NCBI GenBank assembly: GCA_965240325.2
Contig: OZ251251.1
Coordinates: 434,001 to 498,000, forward strand
DNA: 64,000 nt
DNA from: Rebecca billardiae RCC1528
Lineage: Eukaryota; Protista; Haptophyta
Reading direction: 5' to 3'
In this document: positions 1-41,252 of the stretch, one piece after another
Numbering within the stretch: position 1 is the first letter of the stretch
Layout: each line of letters opens with the position of its first letter
Program-made: the position numbers and the translations under genes
The notes under the pieces: model-generated
Told to the model about the DNA's origin: nothing
The model's input: only the letters and a program-made list of their open reading frames with translations
The model's database searches: none

Positions 1-3000
1 GCGCGCGGCGTGCGCGCCGCGCTCAACACCTGGCGCGACGCCGCGCCCGCCGCGGCCGCGGCGCGCGCGCTCGGCGGCCGCGCGGCGGCGGCGTGGGCGG
101 CGGGCGGCGCGGGCCGCGCGCTGCGCGCGTGGGCGGCCGCGGCGCGCGACGGCGCGGCGCTGGCGCGCGTGGCGCGCGCGTGGCGCGCGGCCGACGGCGC
201 GCGCGCGTGGCGCGCGCTCGACGCCGCCACCGCCGCGGGCCGCGCGCGCGCGCGCGCCGGCCGCCTGCTCGCGCGGCGGCGCGCGCGCGCGGCGGCGCGC
301 GCCGCGTGGGCGGCGTGGGCTGCGGACGCGGGCGGCGCGGCCGCGGCGGAGCGCGGCCGGCGGCGCGCGGCGGCGCGCTGGACGTCGGGCGCGCTGGGGC
401 AGTCGTGGGGGCACTGGGCGGCGTCGACGCGCGCGTACGGCGCGGGGCTCCTCGCCATCCTGCGCTGGACCAACGCGCGCCTCGCCGCCGCCCTCACCGC
501 GTGGGCCGACGGCGCGGCCGACGCGGCCGCGCGCCGCCGCGCCGCGGATGCGTGGGCGGCCGCGGACGCGCGCGCGCGCGCGCTGCGCGCGTGGCGCGTG
601 CACGCGGCGTGGGCGGCGGCGGCGCGCGGCGTGGCGCGCGCGGCGGTGCGCCGCTGGGCCGCCGTCTCCGTCCTGCGCGCCACGCGCGCCTGGGCCGCCA
701 ACGCGCGCGCGCGCCGGCTCGGCGGGCGCGCGGTGCGCGCGGCCGCGCGGCTGGCCGAGGCCTCGGCGCTGCGGACGTGGCAGGGCGCGGCGCGCGCGGC
801 CGCGCTGCGCGCGTGGTCGGCGCGCGCGTGGGCGTCGGCGGCGGCGGCGCGCGCGCTGCGCGGCTGGGCGCCCGCCGCCGCGCAGCGCGCCCGCCAGCGC
901 CGCGTCGCCGCCGCGTGGGCGCGCGCCGCCGAGGCGCGCGCGCTGCGCGCGCTCGCGGCGCGCGCCGCGGCCGCGGCCGCGGCGCGGCGCGGCGCGCGCG
1001 CGGCCGCGCTGCGCTGGGCGGGCGGCGCGCTGGGAGGCTCGTGGGCGGCGTGGGGCGAGGAGGTGGCGGCGCACGCGCGGATGCGCCGCGCGCTCGCCGC
1101 CGCGCGCGCCGACGGCGCCGCCGCCGCGCTGCGCGCGTGGGCCGCCGCGGCGCGCGCGGCGGCTCTCGGCGCGCGCGCGGGCCGCGCGCTCGCCGCCGGC
1201 GCGGCCGCGCGCGCGTGGCGCGCGTGGGCGGCCGCGGCCGCCGACGGGCGGCGCGGCGCGCACCGGCTGCGCGCGGGCACGCTGCGCTGGGCGGCGGGCG
1301 CGCTCGCGCGCTCGTGGGCCGAGTGGGCCGACGAGGCCGCCACCGTCGCCACCCTCCTCACCGCTGTCGTGCTCGCGCGCAACTATGGCGCGGGCCGCGC
1401 GCTGCGCGCGTGGGCGGCGGGCGCGCGCGGCCGCGCGCTGCGCGCGCGCGCCGCCGCGGTGCTCGCGGCGGACGGCGCGGGCGCGGCGGCGCTGCGCGCG
1501 CTGAACAGCTGGCGGGCGAACGCGCGCGAGCGCGCGCTCGCCGCCGCCGCCGCGCGCGCCGCGCGCGCGCCGCTCGCCGCGCCGCTCGCGGCGTGGGCGG
1601 CCGCGACCGCGGCGCGGCGCGCGCGCCGCGCGCGGCTGCTGCGCGCGGCCGCGCGCCTCGCCGCCGGCGGCACCGCGGCGGCGTTCGACGCGTGGGCGGC
1701 GGAGGCGCGCGGGCGCGCGCTGCTGCGCGCGGGCGCGCTCGTGCTCGCGGGCGCCAAGGTCGCCGCCGCCTTCCGCGCGTGGGCCGGCGCCACGCCGGCG
1801 CGCGGCGCGCTGCGCGCGCGCGCGCGCGCCGCGGCCGCGGCTGCGACGATCGGCGCCGGCCGCGGCGGCGCGGCGCGCGCGCTGCGCGCGTGGCGGCAGC
1901 ACGGCGCGCTGCGCGCGTACGCGGCGCTCGCGCTCGGCCGCGGCGCGCGCGCGTCGGCCGCGGCGCGCGCGCGCGACGCGCTGCGCGCCTGGCGCACCGC
2001 CGCGCTCGCCGCGCGCTTCGGCGCGGCCGCGCGCGCGCGCGGCGCGGCGCTCGCGCTGCGCGCGTGGGCGGCGGCGCGCGCCGAGCGCCGCGCGGCGCTC
2101 GACGGCGTCGAGCTCGCGCTGGGCGCGTGGGTGGGCGGCGCGCTCGCGTCGGCGTTCTCGCGCTGGCTCGACGCCGCCACCGCGCTCGCGCTCCTCCGCG
2201 CCGCCGCGCTGCCGCTCCTCGGCGGCCGCGCCGCGCGCGCGCTCGGCAGCTGGCGCGCCGCGGCCGCGGACGCGCGCCGCGGCGGCGCGGCGGCGCGCGC
2301 GTTCGCGGGCGGCGCGCGCGCGCGGTGCGTGGCGGCGCTGCGCGCGCACGCGGCCGCGCGGCGCGGCGCGGCGGAGGCGCTCGCCGGCCCCGCGCGCCGC
2401 TGGCGCGCCGGCGCGCTCGGCGCCGCGTACGCCGCGCTCGCCGACCACGCCGACGCGCGGCGCGCGGCGCGCGGCGCGCTGCGCTCCGGCTGGCGCGCGT
2501 GGGCGGGCGGCGCGCTGCGCGACAGCTGGGCGCACTGGCGCGAGGGCGGGCGCGCGGTGCGGCTGGGCGCGCGCGCGGCGGGCGCGCTGCGCGGCTCGGC
2601 GCGCGGCGCGGCGCTGCGCACCTGGGCCGCCGAGGCGCGCCGCCGCGCGCTGCGCGCGTACTCGGCGCTCGCGCTGCGCGGCGGCGCGCGCTGGCGCGCG
2701 CTGCGCGGCTGGCGCGACGCGGCCGCGGCGTGCGCCGCCGCCGCGGCCGAGCTGCGCGCGCGCGGCGCGCGGGTGGGCGCCGTGCTGCTCGCGCGCGGCG
2801 CGGCGCGCGCGACGCGCGCGTGGGCGGAGCACGCGCGGCTGCGCTCGCTCGAGGCGCGCGCCGCGCGCGCGCTCGGCGGCGGCGCGCGCTGGCGCGCGCT
2901 GCAGGCGTGGCGCGACGCGGCGGCGCGGCGGTCGGCGGCGCTCCTGACCCTGGCGTCGCGCGGCGCCGCGGCCGCGGCCGCGCTGCGGCTGCGCGCGCTC

Positions 3001-6000
3001 GCGCCGGCGTGGCGCGGCTGGCGCGCGCACGCGGCGCTCCGCGCGACGCAGGCGCGCGCGGCGCGCGCGCTCGGCGGCGGCGCGCGCTGGCGCGCGCTCG
3101 ATGGCTGGCGCGCGGCCGCGGCGCGGCGCGCGGCGGCGCTCCTGACGCTGACGTCGCGCGGCGCCGCGGCGGCGGCCGCGCTGCGCGGCCGCCGCGTCGC
3201 GCCGGCGTGGCGCGGCTGGCGCGAGCACGCGGCGCTCCGCGCGACGCAGGCGCGCGCGGCGCGCGCGCTCGGCGGCGGCGCGCGCTGGCGCGCGCTGCAG
3301 GCGTGGCGCGACGCGGCGGCGCGGCGCGCGGCGGCGCTCCTGACGCTGACGTCGCGCGGCGCCGCGGCCGCGGCCGCGCTGCGGCTGCGCGCGCTCGCGC
3401 CCGCGTGGCGCGGCTGGCGCGCGGCCGCGGCGCTCCGCGCGACGCAGGCGCGCGCGGCGCGCGCGCTGCGCGGCGGCCCGGCCGCGCGCGCGCTCGACGC
3501 GTGGCGCGCCGCGCTCGGCGCGCGCGCCGCGGCGGCGGCCGCGCTGCGCGCGCCCGCGGCGCGCGCCGCGGCCGCGCTGCGCGGCCGCGCGCTCGCGCCC
3601 GCGTGGCGCGGCTGGCGCGCGGCCGCGCGCGCGCGCGCGCTGCGCGCGTACTCGGCGCTCGCGCTGCGCGGCGGCGCGCGGTACCGCGCGCTGCGCGACT
3701 GGGCCGACACGGCGCGCCGCCGCCGCGCCGCGCGCGACGCGCTCCTCTCCGACGGCGAGCGCGCCGCGCGAGCGTTCGCCCACCGCGCGCTCGCGCCCGC
3801 GTGGCGCGCGTGGGCGCGCGGCGCGCGGCGGCGCGCGCTCGAGCGCCTCTCCGCGCTCGCGCTGCGCGGCGGCGCGCGCTGGCGCGCGCTCGACGCGTGG
3901 CGCCGCGGCGCGGGCGCGCGCGCCGCGCGCGCCGCCGCGCGGCGCGCGGGCGCGCGCGCCGCCGCCGCGCTGCGGCTGCGCGCGCTCGCGCCCGCGTGGC
4001 GCGGCTGGCGCGCGGCCGCGGCGCTGCGCGGTACGGAGGCGCGCGCGGCGCGCGCGCTGCGCGGCGGCGCGCGCTGGCGCGCGGTGCAGGCGTGGCGCGG
4101 CGCGGCGGCGGCGCGCGGCGCGGCGCGCGGCGCGCTGGCCGCGCGCGGCACCGCCGCCGCCGCCGCGCTGCGCCACCGCGCGCTCGCGCCCGCGTGGCGC
4201 GGCTGGCACGCGGCCGCGGCGCTGCGCGCGCTCGAGCGCGCGGCCGCGAGCGCGCTGCGCGGCGGCGGGCGCTGGCGCGCGCTGCAGGCGTGGCGCGACG
4301 GCGCGGGCGCGCGCGCGGCGGCGCGCGGCGCGCTGCGCGCGCGCGGCGCCGCCGCCGCGGCCGCGCTGCTCGCGCGCGCGCGCGCGCCGGCGTGGCGCGC
4401 GTGGGCCGCGCGCGCGCGGCTGCGCGCACTCGAGGCGCGCGCGGCGCGCGCGCTGCGCGGCGGCGCCGCGTGGCGCGCGCTGCAGCGCTGGCGCGCCGCC
4501 GCCGCCGCCGCGGCGGGCGTGGCGGCGGCGCTGCGCGGGGCGGCGGCGCGCGCGGCGGCCGCGCTCGCGCGCCGCCGCTCCGCGCCTGCGTGGCGCGCGT
4601 GGGCCCACTTCGCCGCGCGCCGCGCGCTGCGCGCGTACTCGGCGCTCGCGCTGCGCGGCGGCGCGCGCTGGCGCGCGCTGCGCGGCTGGCGCGACGCGGC
4701 CGCGGCGCGCGGCGCGCGCGCGCGCGCGCTCGCGACGCGCGGCGAGCGCGCGGCGCGCGCGCTGCGCGCGCGGCGCGCGGCGCCCGCGTGGCGCGCGTGG
4801 GCGCACGCCGCGCGCGCGCGCGCGCTCGAGCGCCTCTCCGCGCTCGCGCTGCGCGGCGGCGCGCGCTGGCGCGCGCTCGCGCGCTGGCGCGACGCATGTG
4901 CCGCGCGGCGGCGCGCGGCCGACCCGCTCGCGCGCGCCGCGCGCGTGGGCGCGCACGTGGCGCGGCGCTCGCAGGCGCGCGCGCTGCGCGGCTGGGCCGC
5001 GGCGGCGCGCGAGGCGCGGCAGCGCGGCCGCGCGCTCGCCGCCGCGCGCGGCGGCGCGCGCTGGCGCGCGCTCGACGGCTGGCGCTCGGCGGCGCGCGGC
5101 GCCGCGGCCGGCGCGGCCGCGCTGGCCGCGGGACGGCGCGCCGCGGCCACGCTCGGCGCGCGCCGCGTCGCGCCGGCGTGGCGCGCGTGGGCGGCGTTCG
5201 CGCACTGGGGCGCGCTGCGCGCGTACGCGGCGCTCGCGCTGCGCGGCGGCAAGCGCTGGCGCGCGCTCGACGGCTGGCGCACCGCCGCCGCCAGCGCGAG
5301 GCACAAGCGCGCCGCGGCCGCGGTCGGCGCGACCGCGGCCGCGGCGCTGCGGCAGCACGGCGCGGCGCGCGCGACGCGCGCGTGGGCGGCGGGCGCGCGG
5401 CTGCGCGCGCTCGAGGCGCGCGCGGCGCTCGCGCTGCGCGGCGGCGCCGCGTGGCGCGCGCTCCACCTCTGGCGCGCCGCCGCCGCCGCGCGCGCCGAGG
5501 CGGTGGCGGCGCTGCGCGCGCGCGCCGGCCGCGTCGCGGCCGCGCTGCGGCTGCGGCGCCAAGGCCCCGCGTGGCGCGGCTGGCGTCACTTCGCGCGGCG
5601 GCGCGCGCTGAGCCAGCTCTCGGCGCTCGCGCTGCGCGGCGGGAAGCGCTGGCGCGCGCTCGCGCGCTGGCGCCGCGCGGTCGCCGACCGCAGCGCCGCC
5701 GCGCTCGCCGCGCGCGCCGCGCGCGCGTGGCGCGGCGCGGCGGCCGGCCGCGCGGCGCGCGCGTGGGCGGCGCGCGCGGCCGCGCGCGCGCTGCGGCTGC
5801 GCGCCGCGCGCTCGCTGCGCCTCAGCCGCGCGGCGCGCGCGCTGCGCACGTGGCTGCGCGCGCACCGCGCCGCCGCCGCCGCCGCGCGCATCGCCCACGC
5901 CGCCGACCCGCGCGCGCGCCGCCGCGCGCCGATGCGCGCCGCGTGGCGCCGGCTGCGCGCGACCGCGGCCGCGGCGCGCGCGCTCGGCGGATCGGCGCGC

Positions 6001-31624: not shown

Positions 31625-32737
31625 GCTTGGCGGCCGTCGCGCGTCGGCGCTTTGCCCGGTGTAACAGTCGCGCAAGGACGGCCCTTGAGTCGCGTGGATT
31701 TATTCCGATTTTCAGCACGGTCGACGAGAGTCCGGTTGACTCCGGAGGCACCACGCCGGAAGGGGCGTCATTCAGCGTCATTGCCCAGCAGGACAAACTT
31801 CCGCGGTCGTCTTTTCAGATCTGATGCGCTTTTCAAAACGAAATGTTCCGCGCTCTGTCCAACGGCAAAGCGCAGCGGATGGCGGCTTCGGCGCCGCAGC
31901 CGATGGCTGGGCGTCGCCGTGCCCGCAGAAGACGTGCGTCGGAGGCAATGAAGCGGGCAGATGGCGCGTCACACGCGTCGTGGAAGTCGGCCGTGACGCT
32001 CGCCCGCCTCAGCGCCCGCGGCGAAGCCACGTCCATGGGCGCCCTGCGTGCAGGCGGCACGGCCACGCCGGCTCGGCCTGACCGGGACCGGCCGTAGGCG
32101 CCGTAGCGACTAGCGGGCGTAGGCCGCCCCGCCCCGCTCGCGGCCCGCCACGGCGACCGGCCTCGCACGCGGCCTAGCGGCGCCGAACGGGCATCCCAGC
32201 TGCGGTCATTCGACTTGCGCGCCGGGAGACGGGTGCCAGCTAGCCAACGCGCACGCGCCGCGAGCTGCAAGGCATGCGCAAACGTCGCCCGCCGCCACCG
32301 CGGCCGAGCGTGCGCCGAAAGCGGCACAGCGTGAGAGGGAGAGGGCCTGCAGAACTACTCAAGAAGGGGCCCCGATCTATTCGAAGGCGGCTCTGGTCGG
32401 GCGCCCTCCTTAAGTGCATGATTTCTGCAGCTTGGGTCGCGTTTGTCCAGCTGGCGCAACGCTCCGGTTCGATCGTCGTTCGGACGAGCCCGGGTCGAAG
32501 GAAACCCCGCCTAAAAACAAGGAAACAAAAAAATAGGCGTAGGATTCGTAGCGCACAAGCAGCTCGCGGCTGGCCTCGTGATGGCTCGTCAGCACGGCGT
32601 CGGCGTCGAAACGCCTCGCCGGGCGGCCGGCGGGGCGCACTCGGCGGCTCTATCGGCCGAGCAGACATCCCGTGCCATCCGCGCGCCCGAGCACCGTCAC
32701 CTCCACGCCGCCGGCGGGTGCCGGGTGGGGGCGCGAG

Positions 32738-35700
32738 CTAGGGCGCCACGGCCTTGAACGGCGCGCCGCCGTTGCCGGGCGCGGCGGCGGCGCCGCCGCC
32801 GCTCGCGGCCGCGCCGCCCCCGCCGAGCTGCGAGCGCGAGGGCTGCGTGCCAAACATGCGGGCGGAGGCGGCGCGCATGCTGTCCATGCGCCTGGGCGGC
32901 GAGGACGGCCGCGCCGCCGTGCCGCTCTCCTCGTCGCCGCCGCTCGGCGCCGGCGGCTTGGCGGGCTTTGCCCCAAAACCCTTCACCAACACCTTGGCCG
33001 GCCCCTTGGGCGGCGACGCCGGCGCCGACGCGGCCGCGCCCATCTTTGTGACGGCGACCGCGCTGAGGCCGCCGGCTTGCGTCGCGCCGCGCTGGCGCAC
33101 CATGTTGCGGACGAGGCGCATGCGCACGCCCGCCGAGCGCTTGCGCAGCCGCGCGCGCCGCTGCGACTCGAGCAGCGACTCGCGCAGCGCGTGCGCCAGC
33201 TCGAGCGTGGACGCGTGCATGTGCACGCCCGGCCGGAGCACGGGCGGATGCGTCTCGAAGAGCACACGCGCGAGCCCGTCCGCGCCCCACTTGGCCGGGA
33301 CGAAGGAGCGGCGGATGTGCTCCCACGGCGCGTAGAGCGGGTCGTTCGTGTCGTGCAGCAGCACGGGCAGCACCGGCAGCTTGGGCGGCAGCCCGTCGCC
33401 CACCGACGACGACGCGTCCGTGCCGTCGTCCAGCTCCTCAGAGTCCGGCTCATCGCGGATGCCGGCGACGGCGCACGCGTTGGCGAGCGTGCGCGCGAGC
33501 TGCGGCGAGCGCGGCCAGAGGATGAGGACGGGGCCGGCGGCGTGCGCCTTCTGCGCCTCCGCGCCGCCGCCGCCGGGCACGCGGCCCCTCGGCGCCTCCG
33601 CCCCCTTCCCACCCGCCTTACCCGCTTTACCCAGCTCGTACGGCGCGCACGCGCGCACAGGCTTGGTCAGCAGCGCGGCGATGTGGGCAAGCGGTTTGGG
33701 ATCGGCGTTGACGATGTGCTCCTCGTCGCGCTCCTGCGGCGCGGCGCGGCGCGTGTGGGGGCAGGAGGGGGTGCGGGCGTGTGGGCACGCGCGCGCGTGC
33801 GTGCGGCCGCGGGCGGCGGCGCCGCGCGTCGCGCCGCGCCGCCCGCCGGCCGCGCCGCCCCGGCCGCCGGCCGCGTCGGCGCGGCGCGGCCCCCCGCGCG
33901 GCGGCGCGCGGCGCGCGGCGCGGCTGCACACCTCGTAAAACTCGCAGCGCACGGCGCGCACGGCGGAGGTGAGCAGCTGCGGCACCTGCGCGGGCGGCAC
34001 GACGGTGGCCTCGTCGCGCCGCGCGGACGAGTTGCCGCCGGCGATGCTCGTGCGGCGCGCCACGCTCGGGCGGTGCGCGCCGGCGCGGCCCGGCGGCGGC
34101 GGCTGCTGCGCGCCGCCGACGCCGCCGCCGCCCTTCTCGGCGCCGCCCGGCTTGTCGGCGCCCTGCCGCCCGCCGGCGGGCGCGTGCGCCGCGTGGTGCG
34201 CGCCGCCCATCAGCAGCGCCGACAGCGTCTTCATGTCGCGCTCCTGATACGCCGCCTTGATGCGCCCGAGCCGCCGCGTGTCGGTTACCACGACGCCGTA
34301 ACCGAACGCGTCTGCGCGCAGCAGCAGCAGCGAGTTGCCGCCGGGCGGCGGCGGCACCGAGCGTCCGGGCTGCGGCACGGCGGAGCCCGGCGTGGCGAAC
34401 GTCGCGAGCACCGGGTCCTCCTCGAGCGGGAAGCTCGCGGAGAGCTCCTCGGTGAGCGGCACGAGGTGGCCGAGCTCGGGCGGTGCGTCGAGCGCCGAGC
34501 CGGCGCCGCGGCCGCGCAGCCGGTTGGCGCTGGCGCTGAGCACGCTCGCGGCGCGCGCGAGCCACGGCGCGCGGCGCCAGAGCGGCGCGAGGCGCGCGTA
34601 CCGCGTCGAGACGGCGTGCACCGGGATCGACGCCGCCGCGTCCTCGCGCAGCAGCGCGTGCTCGAGCACGGCGCGCAGCGGCGCCGCCTCGGCCTCCTCC
34701 TTATCCGCCTTGAGCCCGATCTGCAGCGTGCGCGCCTCGCCCTCGATCTCGCCGAGGTGCGGCTTGAGCCCGCCCGCGCGGCGGAGCAGCTGCGCGGCGC
34801 GCAGGTGCTCCGCGATCGCGAGCGCGGAGGCGGAGAGGTACGCGTCCTCGTCCTCCGGCCGCCCGCCCTGCGCGTGCCACGGGATCATCTCCGCGTCCGG
34901 CACCGCGTCCAGCAGCGCCGCCGCCGCCGCCGAGCCCGACTCGGCGCACTGCGCGCGCAGCTGCTCGATGGTCACGCCGCCGCGCGAGGGCTTGGCGACG
35001 TACACGACGACCACCTTCTTGTCCGGCGCGAGGTGCGCGGCCTGCAGCTGCGCGAGCGCGCCGCCGTCGGCGGTGAAGTAGCCGTCGGAGATGAGCACGA
35101 CCACCGCGCGCGCCTGGTCCATCCGCTCGCGCCACTTCTTCCCGGACTGGCCGATCACGAGGTCCGGGACGAGCGCGCTCACGCGCTCGCGCAGCTCGTT
35201 GGCGGGCTGCTGCCCCGAGTGCCACGCGTACGAGAGGAAGGCGTGGCACCCGCCGGCGACGTGCTCGTCGAGCCGCGTCGCGCGCATGCGCGTCTTGTCC
35301 AGCCGGTCGCGCAGCACGGGCAACTGCCGCTCCTGGTACGCGCGCCACGGCAGCAGCAGCACGGCGGTGAGCAGCACGAGCACAAAGATACCGGTCAGGT
35401 ACGCGCCCAGAATGGACTCGTAGAGGGAGAGCCGCAGCCCGCCCTCGAACAGCGCCTTGGCCGACCACGCGTCGAAGCCGGCGCGGAGCGAGAGGTTGTC
35501 CGCGCCCTCCGAGCCTGCGGTCAGGTGCACCGCAAGCGCGCCCACCAGCATCAGCTCCATGGCGAGCTGCGCCACCAGGACGAGGTCGTTGTCGAGCGCG
35601 GACTGCAGCGGCCGGATGCGCGCGAGCACCGCGACGAAGACGGACTGCACGAAGATCGCCGCGAGCAGCTGCGCGACGGACGCGTACGACGACGCGTCCG

Positions 35701-38700
35701 CGCCGCCGCCCGAGTTGGGCGCGGCGCCGAGCACCGCCACGCGCACCAAGATCACGCCGCCGACCAGCACGAGCTTGCGCAATGTCTCCACCGCCTCCCA
35801 CCAGACGGTGTGCGGCGCGAGCCCGACGCGGATGAAGGAGAGCGGCGACTGCCCCGCCACCCACTCCGAGTCGTCCTTGCGCAGCACGCGGTAGAAGGCG
35901 TAAGGCAGCGCGACCGAGTAGACAAACATCGCGATGTACGCAAACGGCAGGTACGCCTCGTGCTCCGGAGAGTCGAAGTCGACGGAGTAGTCGGACTTGA
36001 GCACGCGCTTCGGACGGCTCGCCTCGACGTCGACCGACTCGGTGTTCACCGCCGAGAAGAGCGACGCGGTCGCGGAGGGCAGGATGAGGTACGCGCTCAT
36101 CAGGAACGGGCGGAGCACCGAGCCCACAAAGTCGCGCCGCTTGTCGAACAGCTTGGAGTGGTGCCGCGCGCGGTGGTAGAGCTCAAAGAGGAGCCACACG
36201 CCGCCGAAGACGGAGAGCACGCCGAGGGGCGCGAGCGCGATCCCGACCATTCCGGTGTGGTACCCCACGCCGATGCAGTTGAACCCGTTGAGGTACAGGT
36301 TGTCGAACGCGAGCCAGCGGAAGCCGCCGAGCGTCTCGCGGAACGCGACCGGCAGCGTGACGCCGTACACGCGCTCGAGCAGCAGCGTGAGCTGCACGAA
36401 CGCGAGCGTGGTGCGCGCCGCCACCTTGAACGAGACGACGACCGCGGGCGTGACCGCGCCCGCCAGCGCCACCTTGAGCTGCGTGAGCAGCTTGCGCGAC
36501 GGCTTGGGCTTCACGCCCGGCTTGTGCCCCTTCAGCCAGCGCGCCAGCGCCGCCGCCTTCTCGTCCATACGCCCGTGGAAGCTCGCGATCACCAGGACGA
36601 CGCACACGAGGGAGAAGCCGATCATCAGCCCGAAGACGAGCTCGGCGCTCCGTGTCGCCGCGGGGCAGACGGCGCACCGGTCGTCGGTGCCCATGAAGAA
36701 GCTGCGCGCGCGGGGGGGGCGAGAGGGGGCGAGAGGGGGTCAGGCGGGGCGCGCGGCGCGGCGCGACACCGGCCGCCGCCGCCCAGCCGCGCGCGCCGCG
36801 CCGCGCGCAAAGGGACGGCGCGGCGCGGCCGCCGGCTGGGCGGCGGCCACGCTGAGAGACGCGCGCGGCGCGCGCACCCTGGGTCACACACTTCGCAGTA
36901 CGGCCCGCCGTGGTGCTCGGCGCAGAGCTCGCCGCTCTTCGCGCCCTTCGAGCCCGGGCACGCGCGCTCGCCGCGGCCGCACTCGCGCAGGTCTGCCGTG
37001 TCCTTGGAGTTGCGCCAGAAGCCGGGCTTCACCTCGAGCGTGGCGAGCGTCGAGCCGACTCTCGCGCACGAGACGGAGGAGTTGCACGCGAAGCAGATTC
37101 GGTTCGACTCGTTGTACTTGCGCTCGTAGTACCCCTGCTGGCACACGCAGCCCGCCTCGGCGTCCGTCCCCTCAAACTCGGTCGTCATGAACGGGTCCAC
37201 GTCCGTGCACTGCTGGCACACGTCGTTGTCGTCCGCGTCGTCCGCCGTGCGGAACGTGCCGATCGGGCAGGGCTCGCTGCGCGCGCAGGGCCGCCGGGCG
37301 CCGGGCGGGGCGGCGCGCGGCGCGCGGCGCAGAGCGTGAGGGCGAGCGCGCCTACCCGGAGACGCGCGGCGCGGCCGTTACGCGCGGCGGTTACGCACCA
37401 CGGCGTGTTGCCCGTGCGGCCGAGGCCGGCGGGGCACGAGCCTCGGTACGTGAAGAGGCCGCCGGCGAAGGCGTCCTGCGCGCCCGTCTGGTTCTTGACG
37501 ATCCGGATGGACGGCACGTCGGCGAAGTCGGCGGTGGGCTTGGGCGGCGCGACGCACCACGCGAACTGCGGCGAGATGATGCCGGGCTCGGAGCACGCCG
37601 TCTGCGCGCCCGTCGCGTCGTCCACCAAGAAGATGGCGATCTGGTCGCACGGCACGTCGCACGCGTCGCCAAAGTTGGCGCCCTGCAGGAAGAGCGGGCC
37701 CGGGTCGTTCGGGTTGAACTCCTGCGCGTTGAGGATGAGGTTGACGACGGCGGAGGGCGGCGGCGGCGAGGGCGGCGGCGGCGAGGGCGGCGGCGAGGGC
37801 GGCGGCGAGGGCGGCGGCAGTGGCGGCGGCGGCGAGGGCGGCGGCGAGGGCGGCGGCGAGGGCGGCGGGCTCGGCGGCGGCGAGGGCGGCGGCGGGCTGG
37901 GCGGCGGGCTCGGCGGCGGCGACGGCGGCGGCGGGCTGGGCGGCGGGCTGGGCGGCGGCGACGGCGGCGGCGACGGCGGCGGCGTAGGCGGCGGCGGCGG
38001 GCTGGGCGGCGGGCTGGGCGGCGGGCTGGGCGGCGGGCTCGGCGGCGGTGACGGCGGCGGGCTCGGCGGCGGCGAGGGCGGCGGCGGGCTGGGCGGCGGG
38101 CTGGGCGGCGGGCTGGGCGGCGGCGAGGGCGGCGGGCTGGGCGGCGGCGAGGGCGGCGGGCTGGGCGGCGGGCTGGGCGGCGGCGAGGGCGGCGGCGGGC
38201 TCGGCGGCGGGCTCGGCGGCGGCGAGGGAGGCGGGCTCGGCGGCGGCGACGGCGGGCTGGGCGGCGGGAAGGGCAGGCCGCGCGGCGGCGGCGGCGGCAG
38301 CGGCGGCGGGCTGGGCGGCGGGCTGGGCGGCGGGCTGGGCGGCGGGCTGGGCGGCGGCGGCGGCGGGCTCGGCGGCGGGCTCGGCGGCACGTTGAGCAGC
38401 GCCACCTTCTGCACCGTCGCGCCCACCGCCTGCTGCAGCGCCGCGCTGTCCGTCTGCGCCACCGTCGCCACCACGTTGACGGGATTGGGCTCGTCCGCCG
38501 GCTGGAAGATCTCCACGTCCACAACGGTCGAGCCGCCGAAGACGGCGATGATCCGGATGCGCCGCTCGTCGAAGTCGCAGCCGCACTCGGCAGAGAGCTG
38601 CGCGTCGATGAAGGCGACCAGCGCCGCCTCCTGCGTCGCGTTCCACGTCGCCACGTCCACGTTGAACTCGTACGAGACGATCGTCACCTCGCCCGGAGGC

Positions 38701-40767
38701 GGCGGCGAGGGCGGCGGGTGCGGCGGCGGGCTGGGCGGCGGGCTGGGCGGCGGGGAGGGCGGCGGCGAGGGCGGCGGCGAGGGCGGCGGGCTCGGCGGCG
38801 GCGAGGGAGGCGGCGGGCTCGGCGGCGGGCTCGGCGGCGGGCTGGGCGGCGGCAGCGGCGGTGGTGGCGGCGGCGACGACGGCGGAGGGCTCGGCGGCGG
38901 CCGCGGCGGCAGCTGCGGCAGCGGCGACGGCGGAGGGCTCGGCGGCGGCAGCGGCGGCAGCTGCGGCAGCGGCGACGGCGGAGGGCTCGGCGGCGGCAGC
39001 GGCGGCAGCTGCGGCAGCGGCGACGGCGGAGGGCTCGGCGGCGGCAGCGGCGGCAGCTGCGGCAGCGGCGACGGCGGAGGGCTCGGCGGCGGGCGCGGCG
39101 GCTGCGCCGGGAACGGCGAGGGCGGAGGGCTCGGCGGCGGGAGCGGCGGTGGTGGCGGCGGGGGCGAGGGCGGCGGGAGCGGGCGCGGTGAAGGCGGGGG
39201 CGAGGGCGGCGGGAGCGGGCGCGGCGAAGGCGGGGCCGCGAAGACAGGGGGCGCAGTGGCGGCGGGAGGGCTTGGCGGGATGCCGCCACCGGTGGCGGGC
39301 GGCACCTGCGCGGCGGCCGGCTCCGGTGGGCTCGGTGGAGTGCCGGCGGCGGGCGGCGCCTGCGCGGCGGCCGGCGGGCTCGGCGGCAGGTTGGCGGTGG
39401 CGGCGGGCGGCGGGCTCGGCGGGTCGTCGGCGGCGGCGGGCGGCGCCTGCGCCACGGGCGGTATCGGCGGGCTCGGCGGGTCGGTGGCGGCGGCGGGCGG
39501 CGCCTGCGCCACGGGCGGTATCGGCGGGCTCGGCGGGTCGGTGGCGGCGGCGGGCGGCGCCTGCGCCACGGGCGGTATCGGCGGGCTCGGCGGGTCGGTG
39601 GCGGCGGCGGGCGGCGCCTGCGCCACGGGCGGTATCGGCGGGCTCGGCGGGTCGGTGGCGGCGGCGGGCGGCGCCTGCGCGGCAGGCGGCTCCGGTGGGC
39701 TCGGCGGGGTGCCGGCGGCGGGCGGCGCCTGCGCGGCAGGCGGCACCGGTGGGCTCGGCGGGGTGCCGGCGGCGGGCGGCGCCTGCGCGATGGGCGGCTC
39801 CGGTGGGCTCGGCGGAGTGCCGGCGGCGGTGGGGGCCGGGCTCTGCACGCCAGGAGGCGCTGCCAACGCGCCGAGGCCCGGCGGCGGCGGCGAGGGCTGG
39901 CACGCCGCGCCCAAGGCGCTCGCGACGAGCTGCACGCGCTGCCCGATCGTCACGCCCGCGAACGTCACGCCGAGCCGGTACGACGGCACAGTCCGGTCGA
40001 TCGCAACGGACTGGAGGGTGGAGAGGTCCGGGCGGCTGAGAAGTGAGAGGACGGCGCCGTCCAGGTCGAGCGCGAGCGCGAGGGGCGCGGCGTCGGAGGA
40101 CCACGGCGCGCCGGTGCTCACGCGCGTCGTGCCCTGCCACGTGTCGCTACGCTCGCGGGGCGCCGTGTCCGCGCGCGCGCGCGCGCGAGCACGAGCCGAT
40201 GAGGCGCGCGGCGCGGCGCGGCGCCGCACGGCCCGGCTCGGGCGGCGCACGCGCGGCAGCGCACGCGCGCGCGCGCGCGCCGCACCCGTTGTTGCACAGC
40301 ATCACGGTGCTGTCGGAGGGCACGACGTCGAAGATGTACGCGAGCAGATCCGGGTCCTCCTTCGGCGTCACGCCGATGCACATCGAGCCCGTCTCCACGC
40401 TGCCCGTGGCGGGCGCGGTGACGGCGGTCGACTGCTGGCCGGCGGGGTTGGTCGTGTCGAGGTACCAGACGTGCGTGCCCTCGAGCGAGTCGACGGACGG
40501 GCCGTAGGCCGAGCCGATCGACGCCCCGCCCGCGAGCGCGTACGGGCCGTCCACGCTCAGCGTCTTCGCCACGCTCCACGAGCTGAGCGGCGTGCAGTGC
40601 ACGAGCTCGGCGGCTCGCGCGCCCGGCAGCACGGCGGCGGTCGCGGCGAGGGCGAGCAGGAGGAGCTGGCGCGTGCGCGGCGGCAGGACGGTGGGCGCCG
40701 TGCGCCCCCGGCCGCAGGGCGAGCGCGACGCTCGCGCGAGCCCGGGCTCGGGCTCCACGCGTGCCAT
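32738..40767 (-). CDS. Giant surface receptor: signal / Pro-rich / SEA-like / IPT-like / Cys-rich / multi-TM / TIR-like; 5 exons (40767-40286, 40146-37399, 37276-36878, 36701-33932, 33733-32738), about 2464 aa
   Basis: Four GT-AG introns give a continuous 7395-nt frame. Motifs: signal LLLLALAATAAVLPGARA, SPPP repeats, GGSTVVDV, LQGANFG...FTY, CEPCPIGTF...CVCQQGYY, PGFWR...C...GPYCEVC, at least 7 hydrophobic helices with WWEAVETLRKL, and TIR-like HAFLSYAW...VVVLISDGYF. Confidence 0.85.
37752..39830 (-). repeat. Coding extensin-like (SPPP)n arrays plus 48-bp and 57-bp minisatellites
   Basis: PPSPPP arrays at about 37752-38387 and 38690-39240. About 4 copies of a 48-bp unit (PPSPPPSPLPQLPPLP) and about 4 copies of a 57-bp unit (PPSPPIPPVAQAPPAAATD). 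Confidence 0.9.
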
Positions 40768-41252
40768 TTGAGCGCGGCGCGATGCGGCGACCGCCGGCCC
40801 GGGCGGTGGACTTTCGGAGCGAACGTGGCGAGGCGCGCCGCGCAAGAGAGCTCGGAAATGGGCTCTCCGAGGTGCGCGCGCTGGCAGTGGCGGCGCCCCG
40901 ACGACCGAGGCATAACAGCATTCGTCAAATGTGGGTGCGCTTCGTGAAAGGACGGCCGTAAAAACTAAAACGTCGTCAGAATTGCATGGCAAGCGCCGAA
41001 GCCTCGTGCTAGGTGAATTGCGAGCAGCGCGGGTGCCACGCTCCCAGCCGGATAGGCGGTCGGCGGGCTGTCGTATGAGCGGGTAACGCGTTTTGGAAGG
41101 GATTGATATCAGCCAACTTCGTCGATTGGCTTCGGCCGCCAGCCTGATCACCCGGAGCCCGTTATAAAGGGGAATTTAAAAGATCACTGCTCATTATCGT
41201 AGTGGTACATAAATCAGTACCCGCCATCAGCCAGCGTCGGCAGCATGCCGAC

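Follow-up and report, generated by a model that had tools for sequence, protein, structure and literature searches.

A five-exon receptor-family gene of the haptophyte Rebecca billardiae predicted to join a stalked, SEA-like ectodomain to a nine-helix membrane core and a probably non-enzymatic TIR domain

Introduction

What does a TIR domain do at the end of a large, multi-pass surface protein of an alga, and does it act as an enzyme? Immunity in bacteria, plants and animals alike makes use of TIR domains, and the study of what they do in protists has just begun. The question is raised by a locus of the haptophyte Rebecca billardiae RCC1528, found in a stretch of 64,000 nucleotides (nt) from GenBank assembly GCA_965240325.2 (contig OZ251251.1, positions 434,001 to 498,000 of the forward strand). 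We refer to this whole stretch as the window, and all positions given below are counted within it. An earlier note, made from the letters of the window alone, had proposed that positions 32738 to 40767 encode an adhesion-receptor-like, multi-pass protein wired to a TIR domain, in which ectodomain shedding would be coupled to TIR signalling and whose architecture might be undescribed.

Our comparisons indicate that the locus is a real, single gene of five exons encoding a protein of about 2464 residues. As a whole, we read it as a stalked member of a receptor family whose TIR domain would serve as a non-enzymatic scaffold or regulator, and we put the probability of this reading at roughly 0.6.

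Results

Splice sites and paralogue comparisons point to a single gene

The predicted gene is a large surface-protein gene on the minus strand, with GT-AG introns, that runs from an ATG at 40767 to a TAG stop at 32738-32740. Exon 1 (40286..40767) opens with the first in-frame ATG and ends at the donor gg/gtgcgg (40286/40285). Exon 2 (37399..40146) holds 915 stop-free codons between the acceptor gtag/c (40147/40146) and the donor tg/gtgcgt (37399/37398), and exon 3 (36878..37276) encodes Cys-rich, ephrin-receptor-like repeats. Exon 4 (33932..36701), bounded by the acceptor cgcag/c (36702/36701) and the donor gag/gtgtgc (33932/33931), encodes the end of the Cys-rich repeats, a nine-helix membrane core and the TIR domain, plus a linker of low conservation, while exon 5 (32741..33733) encodes a cytosolic tail followed by the TAG. 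The exon lengths sum to 7392 nt, or 2464 codons in frame, and introns 1 to 4 (139, 122, 176 and 198 nt, respectively) each start with GTG(C/T)G and end with AG. Since intron 4 (33734..33931, 198 nt; GT, a polypyrimidine tract, then CAG) is in frame and free of stops, a mechanical list of open reading frames (ORFs) shows a single 1318-codon frame at this place. Searches and folds were run exon by exon, with each exon taken separately.

Near-identical paralogues on contigs C18 and C14 of the same genome allowed introns 2-4 to be checked. In the coding parts, identity to these copies is 0.9-0.99 and all insertions and deletions (indels) are multiples of three. Across introns 2-4, identity drops to as low as 0.63, with indels of 1, 2, 4, 5, 8, 13, 22, 34, 41 and 46 nt; for intron 4 itself the identity falls to 0.63-0.65 and the indels are of 2, 4, 8, 41 and 46 nt. 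Exons 2, 3 and 4 are tied together because intron 2 interrupts the Cys codon with which a C..CP.G.F repeat is completed and intron 3 splits a Cys-rich repeat. Exons 3 and 4 are also assigned to one protein because they are collinear with P0001, the single homologue returned by a word-indexed protein search, in which Cys-rich repeats adjoin the core and TIR domain. Exon 4 is 34% identical to P0001 over 571 residues (E = 3e-58), and the Cys-rich repeats of exon 3 match P0001 residues 308-457 (BLASTP, E = 1e-21), Pfam placing an Ephrin_rec_like domain at residues 295-346 inside the Cys-rich region so matched. The in-frame 2464 codons and the collinearity with P0001 bear out the earlier proposal of one multi-exon gene with a modular ectodomain, a multi-pass core and a TIR domain, and the match of exon 3 does the same for its Cys-rich module.

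Downstream, the paralogue homology stops right at the stop codon; upstream, it ends inside the first of two proline-rich stalks, at about 38900 for C14 and 39200 for C18. From these limits, the copies are therefore true gene duplicates and not alleles. The upstream limit also points to a separate history of the N-terminal part, which would be expected if exons 1-2 were a gene of their own for a secreted wall glycoprotein and the receptor started at exon 3 or later. We give such a division very little credence. The junction of exons 2 and 3 splits the Cys codon mentioned above, and the model contains no stop or start between these exons. Paralogue homology is unbroken from the SEA-like module in exon 2 to the stop codon, in a paralogue on contig C23, too, a SEA-like module lies upstream of the core and TIR domain, and family members are single proteins with large ectodomains.

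Upstream of the shared part, in stalk 1 and the N-terminal domain (38900-40767), the three near-identical copies differ from one another, a pattern suggesting that, after duplication, the outermost domain was swapped.

The locus is about 75% G+C and has long open frames on both strands, with protein-like products coming from the minus-strand frames only. Two plus-strand ORFs, at 32672-37129 (1485 codons) and 36910-40947 (1345 codons), have Gly/Arg/Ala-rich products and were rejected as artefacts of the G+C content. Away from the gene, positions 1-6000 form a tract of about 6 kb at 90% G+C with a strongly negative AT skew, the rest of the window being at 60-78%.

The gene belongs to a large protist family

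To place the gene among known proteins, a family profile of core plus TIR domain was built from the window gene, its paralogues and P0001, so that the window sequence is part of the model, and was scored without an index against 1.84 billion representatives. At E <= 1e-3 there were 9131 matching proteins, and the stricter limit of E <= 1e-30 left 458 protein clusters. Core and TIR domain are both covered in nearly all of the best 150. When 27 family matches were scanned with Pfam, TIR_2 was found in 23 (E <= 1e-3) and Ephrin_rec_like in 13. Their N-terminal parts vary, with Beta_helix in six, ANF_receptor in three, leucine-rich repeats (LRRs) in two, Peripla_BP_6 in two, and one occurrence each of a chitinase-like domain and a filamin repeat. 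P0001 itself combines LRRs and ephrin-receptor-like repeats with the same core and a TIR_2 match of 27.8 bits; the TIR_2 scores of the homologues P0002, P0009 and P0017 are 29.1, 30.9 and 28.7 bits. Prymnesium parvum supplies all of the named members, as hypothetical proteins (e.g. KAL1499130.1, KAL1499729.1 and KAL1508111.1), the remaining ones coming from marine metagenomes and Tara data (including the metagenomic P0001-P0004).

With the members from P. parvum and P0001-P0004, the window gene shares the core motifs VY.V.LP and WWE..E..R as well as the residues H.F.S..W..GQ of the TIR fold core. What sets it apart is its ectodomain: the place taken in other members by LRR, ANF-receptor or beta-helix domains is filled by a SEA-like module, proline-rich stalks and an IPT-like module. 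A census of paralogues, which the earlier note had called for, found a core followed by a TIR domain at no fewer than 10 loci of the R. billardiae genome, and more distant paralogues of the core besides. By these sequence criteria, the window gene belongs to a large protist family that is uncharacterised and, to date, mostly haptophyte. Its members follow one plan, in which a variable ectodomain and Cys-rich ephrin-receptor-like repeats precede a conserved nine-helix core and a cytosolic TIR domain. Our literature searches (Ephrin_rec_like with TIR; multi-pass with TIR and protist) returned no description of a family with a nine-helix core plus TIR domain. The idea of a singular architecture, or of an undescribed one as the earlier note had wondered, is not supported, given the size of the family, the paralogues in the same genome, the members in P. 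parvum and a mention of comparable genes in the Gephyrocapsa literature (PMC12489294).

The predicted membrane core spans nine helices under strong constraint

Hydropathy and AlphaFold both place nine transmembrane helices at 35324..36664 on the minus strand (ORF residues 11-457), two more than the minimum of seven that had been read from the letters. In the AlphaFold model, the helices span residues 11-54, 83-104, 145-177, 185-216, 243-272, 299-324, 331-360, 366-404 and 409-457. This model of core plus TIR domain (635 residues, 55 family sequences) has a mean predicted local distance difference test score (pLDDT) of 85.4 and a predicted template modelling score (pTM) of 0.83. The charges of the loops agree with an N-out, C-in orientation, and since there are nine helices and a signal peptide, parity would put the TIR domain in the cytosol. 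Measured against the two paralogues, the ratio of nonsynonymous to synonymous substitution rates (dN/dS) is 0.07-0.09 for the core and 0.05-0.11 for the Cys-rich exon 3.

The earlier comparison to an adhesion G-protein-coupled receptor (GPCR) finds no support in these results. Adhesion GPCRs have a seven-helix class B core and a GAIN/GPS region, whereas the window gene has nine helices and gives no 7TM or GAIN signal. Pfam returned no match for the window's own core even at E 10, the 7tm families included, and no GAIN domain on exons 2-4; the membrane-adjacent part consists of Cys-rich ephrin-receptor-like repeats. With the 635-residue model, Foldseek gave TM-scores for the core of at most 0.18, and of 0.13-0.15 for GPCR chains. 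No relative of the core in the PDB was found by the family profile, and the list from an index-free structure search (VIA) with the core plus TIR model was filled by TIR matches.

One family of membrane proteins was approached by the paralogues. Pfam TRP (PF06011), which covers fungal Flc and Pkd2-like putative channels, scores 25.9-26.5 bits with the cores of distant paralogues (E about 4e-6 to 5e-6); each time, the match falls on model positions 265-382 and on the same part of the core. Two family members, one of them from Prymnesium, also match PF06011 weakly. The topology is alike as well, with a signal peptide, an ectodomain, about nine helices and a cytosolic tail, and the constraint on the core, the tightest in the protein, would suit a channel. 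The core may thus be a distant relative of the fungal Flc/Pkd2-type TRP proteins that conducts ions and is gated mechanically by the stalked, possibly self-cleaved ectodomain, the TIR domain then serving in assembly or regulation and not in immune signalling. This is the main rival to our reading, and we regard it as rather unlikely, as every PF06011 match lies below the cut-off of 28.5 bits and only about three helices are covered. The window core has no Pfam match at E 10 and the protein no TRP_N domain, neither sequence nor Foldseek comparison matched the core to a solved structure, and chance matches from composition are common for membrane helices.

Seven loci of the genome match PF06011 below threshold, at 14.3-26.7 bits: L037-L043, at C8:462813, C18:734271, C17:320409, C1:532847, C17:1461452, C17:1331297 and C16:1948953. 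All except L042 also match the family core profile, at E 1e-18 to 1e-38. Ephrin_rec_like and DUF7630 were present in two of the four loci scanned with Pfam, and a TIR domain was not seen within the 3.3 kb fetched per locus.

The TIR domain keeps its fold and lacks the catalytic-type residues

The TIR-fold domain lies at 34790..35245 on the minus strand (ORF residues 484-635), close to the 35248-34810 of the earlier note. The window domain matches TIR_2 (PF13676) with 21.2 bits (E = 4.3e-4), below the Pfam cut-off of 28. Its model has the order bA-aA-bB-aB-bC-aC-bD-aD-bE-aE over residues 485-634, with block-mean pLDDT of 78-94. In the VIA search, the top 17 structural matches were all TIR or TIR-like domains (Z 10.3-15.1), among them Caenorhabditis elegans TIR-1 (Z 15.1), SARM1 (Z 14.8), Arabidopsis AtTIR (Z 13.2), TIR-STING (Z 13.1), RPS4 (Z 12.9) and MyD88 (Z 12.8). 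The root-mean-square deviation (rmsd) was 2.0 over 124 residues for SARM1, and 2.0-2.6 over 124-134 residues for TIR-1 and SARM1 together. Using the core plus TIR model, Foldseek likewise returned the TIR domains of L6, RUN1, TLR1 and TLR10 at a probability of 1.00. A single-sequence search of the PDB with the window TIR found nothing relevant, and the TIR domains of SARM1 and TIR-1 were the best PDB sequence matches of the family profile. The concern that the domain might not fold as a TIR, voiced at the outset, is thus answered by the model, with its Z of 15.1 to TIR-1.

TIR domains of the NADase type (cleaving nicotinamide adenine dinucleotide, NAD) carry their catalytic Glu in helix alpha-C (SARM1 E642; plant CLDEL). 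The family has a conserved Glu that aligns with the catalytic Glu of SARM1 (HKE), TIR-1 (HKE), ADR2 (LDE) and the plant CLDEL motif, and it is kept in 87% of 192 family TIR domains. In the window TIR, this column is occupied by Q549 or A548, depending on the aligner, and the neighbouring positions hold no acidic residue. The domain departs from the family in other ways too: the FLDVDDL segment (beta-B/BB-loop) is lost through a six-residue deletion that leaves IGQSG, and the Asp of GQD and the S.NC motif are gone. The C18 and C14 copies have the same losses, which the nearest homologues outside the genome, P0001 and P0002, do not. Paralogues that bear the Glu include those at the C10 and C26 loci.

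These losses bear on whether the protein could be an enzymatic TIR receptor, in which ligand binding or shedding would trigger NAD cleavage, or a signal of the cyclic ADP-ribose (cADPR) type, by its own TIR domain. The fold is nearest to those of the NADases TIR-1 and SARM1, most family members retain the catalytic-type Glu, and an early induction on virus infection is described for Gephyrocapsa TIR genes whose N-termini are extracellular or multi-helix (PMC12489294). For the window gene we nonetheless consider enzymatic signalling improbable, since the window, C18 and C14 copies have no Glu or Asp at or beside the catalytic column and all three lack the FLDVDDL segment and the S.NC motif. In a green-algal TIR, moreover, an E-to-Q change abolished 3'cADPR production (bioRxiv 10.64898/2026.04.20.719644, preprint). 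Signalling of the enzymatic kind is accordingly not what we would attribute to this copy, and we infer that its TIR domain does not cleave NAD.

The TIR domain has a dN/dS of 0.15, indicative of purifying selection; as this value is low in spite of the motif losses, the fold appears to have been kept while the chemistry was presumably lost. A degenerate TIR could also mean loss of function, in a three-copy clade of duplicates that are becoming pseudogenes. Many TIR residues that are invariant in the family have disappeared, the linker and tail evolve fast (dN/dS 0.4-0.7), and the C18 copy carries a frameshifting deletion of 47 nt in exon 3. Decay of the window gene itself seems highly unlikely to us, as it has an intact frame of 2464 codons with good splice sites, a dN/dS of 0.07-0.15 across core, TIR domain and Cys-rich repeats, even against the intact C14 copy, and coding-part indels that are without exception multiples of three.

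The C18 deletion falls in the Cys-rich exon at the equivalent of 37153-37199, where C14 is intact, and the C18 copy is probably a very young pseudogene, or else reflects an assembly error. In three other paralogues (L005, L007 and L008, on C26 and C23), an intron splits the TIR domain after its first strand, between H.F[IV]SH and.W..GQD; the window TIR has no intron at this position.

A SEA-like module with an invariant Gly-Ser pair lies between two stalks

The ectodomain contains a globular module of 103 residues (38385..38699, minus strand) between two proline-rich stalks. Folded by AlphaFold with an alignment of genomic copies, it reached a pLDDT of 91.8 and a beta-alpha-beta-beta-alpha-beta order (E3-12, H21-39, E48-54, E58-67, H76-92 and E96-101). 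Its GGSTVV sequence, with the G-S at 38529-38534, is placed as GGS/TVV in the beta2-beta3 turn, between E48-54 and E58-67, where SEA domains self-cleave. The G-STVV site put forward in the earlier note at about 38515-38540 is therefore found where a SEA domain would have it. Across 13 copies of the module in the genome, G56 and S57 are the sole invariant residues.

In the VIA search the module matched IA-2 (Z 9.4), the SEA domains of MUC16 (8.3 and 8.0) and PCDH15 MAD12 (8.2), with CELSR1, Gpr126, TMPRSS6 and cadherin-23 MAD28 lower in the list and a TMPRSS SEA domain at Z 7.0. Foldseek placed dystroglycan first, and the ectodomains of IA-2 and phogrin had the highest target-normalised TM-scores, up to 0.70. 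In the ESM Atlas, a SEA cluster ranked sixth (score 0.84). Pfam SEA (PF01390) gave no match to the module at E <= 10. The SEA-like assignment carries weight because the top matches are all membrane-adjacent SEA-type modules and because the G-S is invariant.

The window module thus shares with the SEA modules of MUC1/MUC16, dystroglycan, IA-2, PCDH15 MAD12 and some adhesion GPCRs the same predicted fold, a mucin-like stalk setting and a G-S at the turn where such domains self-cleave. It differs from them in sequence (8-12% identity, no Pfam SEA match), in that its cleavage site is a predicted one, and in its distance from the membrane, from which it is separated by a 210-residue stalk, the IPT-like module and the Cys-rich repeats. 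Self-cleavage at the G-S is plausible, since Gly-Ser is the only invariant pair in the 13 genomic copies. By analogy with mucins and dystroglycan, it is possible that such cleavage makes the ectodomain force-sensitive.

Among 185 family proteins fetched, the SEA-like module was absent save for one weak match without the G-S. The paralogue at C23:1196773-1201435, which has core and TIR domain, carries a SEA-like module upstream of its core (33% identity, G-S kept). By sequence, this copy indicates that the module was joined to the receptor core more than once or was inherited from before the paralogues split.

Stalks, IPT-like module and tail complete the protein

The N-terminus, as read from the sequence, has a long n-region, then the hydrophobic core LLLLALAATAAVL, then ARA/AE, forming a signal peptide or an anchor. 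The N-terminal domain begins in exon 1 and continues in exon 2. It is followed by stalk 1 (38694..39890, minus strand), whose translation has 399 residues with 53% Pro, along with Ala and Ser, in repeated PPSPP units. Stalk 2 (37755..38384, minus strand) has 210 residues with 76% Pro and 21% Ser in extensin-like SPPP repeats. The mucin/extensin-like stalks that the earlier note had drawn on either side of a SEA-like module are thus present, with a confidently modelled module between them. For the IPT-like module that it had listed there is a candidate, a segment of about 106 residues at 37437..37760 (minus strand) named from its language-model neighbours in the ESM Atlas: 28 of the 30 nearest clusters carry PF01833 TIG (score 0.95-0.96, 186-188 shared features). 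Pfam at E <= 10 returned no match for the N-terminal, SEA-like, IPT-like and Cys-rich pieces or for the tail.

In most family members, the TIR domain is followed by a second module homologous to the C-terminal half of their own TIR (hhalign Prob 96%, E = 4.8e-9 against the C-terminal half of the family TIR). A second, degenerate TIR-like module had been suspected in the last exon of the window gene, where it would be barely recognisable compared with the rest of the family. Exon 5 does align with the nearest homologues' tails by hhalign (Prob 84%, E = 7e-6), with a putative remnant at about 33155-33535. It matched neither the second-module profile of the family nor its TIR profile, and the nearest homologues also fail by HMMER, so that this part of the proposal is weakly supported. 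Exon 5 has a dN/dS of 0.42-0.50.

Discussion

On the evidence above, our preferred reading is of a single, five-exon gene of the receptor family with a non-enzymatic TIR domain. In it, the N-terminal domain would be held outward on two extensin-like stalks that flank the SEA-like module, with the IPT/TIG-like module next. The input would be binding to, or mechanical load on, this stalked ectodomain, which is possibly self-cleaved at the SEA-like G-S. Inside the cell, the TIR domain would act as a non-enzymatic scaffold or regulator by assembling with other TIR proteins or with paralogues whose catalytic residues are intact; alternatively, its output would be to tune the activity of the membrane core. 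Self-cleavage, the partners, the trigger and any immune role are speculative components of this scheme, and so is the coupling of ectodomain shedding to TIR output that the earlier note had envisaged.

Several points weigh against this reading. The join of exon 1 to exon 2 is argued from splice logic. The Z values of 8-9.4 for the SEA-like module are middling, and values of this size can arise by chance among common ferredoxin-like folds. As the window TIR is below the Pfam cut-off, the TIR assignment draws on homologues and on modelling with a family alignment, and the non-catalytic role of the domain is deduced from missing residues. The core may be a receptor, a channel or a transporter, and the frameshift in C18 may mean that the three-copy clade is starting to decay.

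Comparison with known systems helps to place the protein. In Gephyrocapsa huxleyi, TIR genes have been described that carry an extracellular region or several N-terminal helices, and one of these encodes a leucine-binding-type domain, an EGF-like region, a membrane segment and a TIR domain (PMC12489294). The latter gene resembles the ANF-receptor members of the window's family, and like the window gene these are haptophyte membrane proteins ending in a cytosolic TIR domain. The likeness is one of architecture, as PMC12489294 does not define a nine-helix core or a family; in addition, the Gephyrocapsa genes keep the catalytic Glu and have expression data, whereas the window gene has no such Glu. 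SARM1, close in fold, is a soluble protein with ARM and SAM domains and a Glu-dependent activity, in contrast to the membrane-bound, Glu-less window protein.

Animal Toll-like receptors have their ectodomain outside and their TIR domain inside, as the window protein is predicted to, and some family members also have LRR ectodomains. The window TIR is probably non-enzymatic and, if so, would signal by assembly, a further point in common. Toll-like receptors are single-pass proteins with LRRs, whereas the window gene has nine helices and no LRR by Pfam; LRRs do occur in P0001 and P0002. Unlike the case of the Toll-like receptors, we know of no adaptor set for the window protein.

A bolder version of the scheme would link all of its parts. 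The SEA-cleaved ectodomain would come apart under load, from a grazer, virus attachment or wall strain, and gate a TRP-like core, and the Glu-less TIR would nucleate active TIR paralogues. We hold this chain of events to be a long shot. If it were true, it would amount to a force-triggered algal TIR pathway with a division between sensor and enzyme TIRs, like that between adaptor and enzyme TIRs in animals.

The window gene is not by itself a new kind of system, as its family has been touched on in the Gephyrocapsa literature. Judged from its sequence, it is of interest on two counts: its SEA-like module contains an invariant G-S, and its TIR domain is conserved but stripped of catalytic residues. 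The gene adds to the evidence that algae of the haptophyte type hold a large receptor family in which swappable ectodomains are combined with a nine-helix core and a cytosolic TIR domain. Within this family, the window copy would bring a SEA-like, possibly self-cleaving module to an algal surface protein, and its conserved, Glu-less TIR domain lends itself as a candidate for a TIR of the non-enzymatic, adaptor type outside animals.

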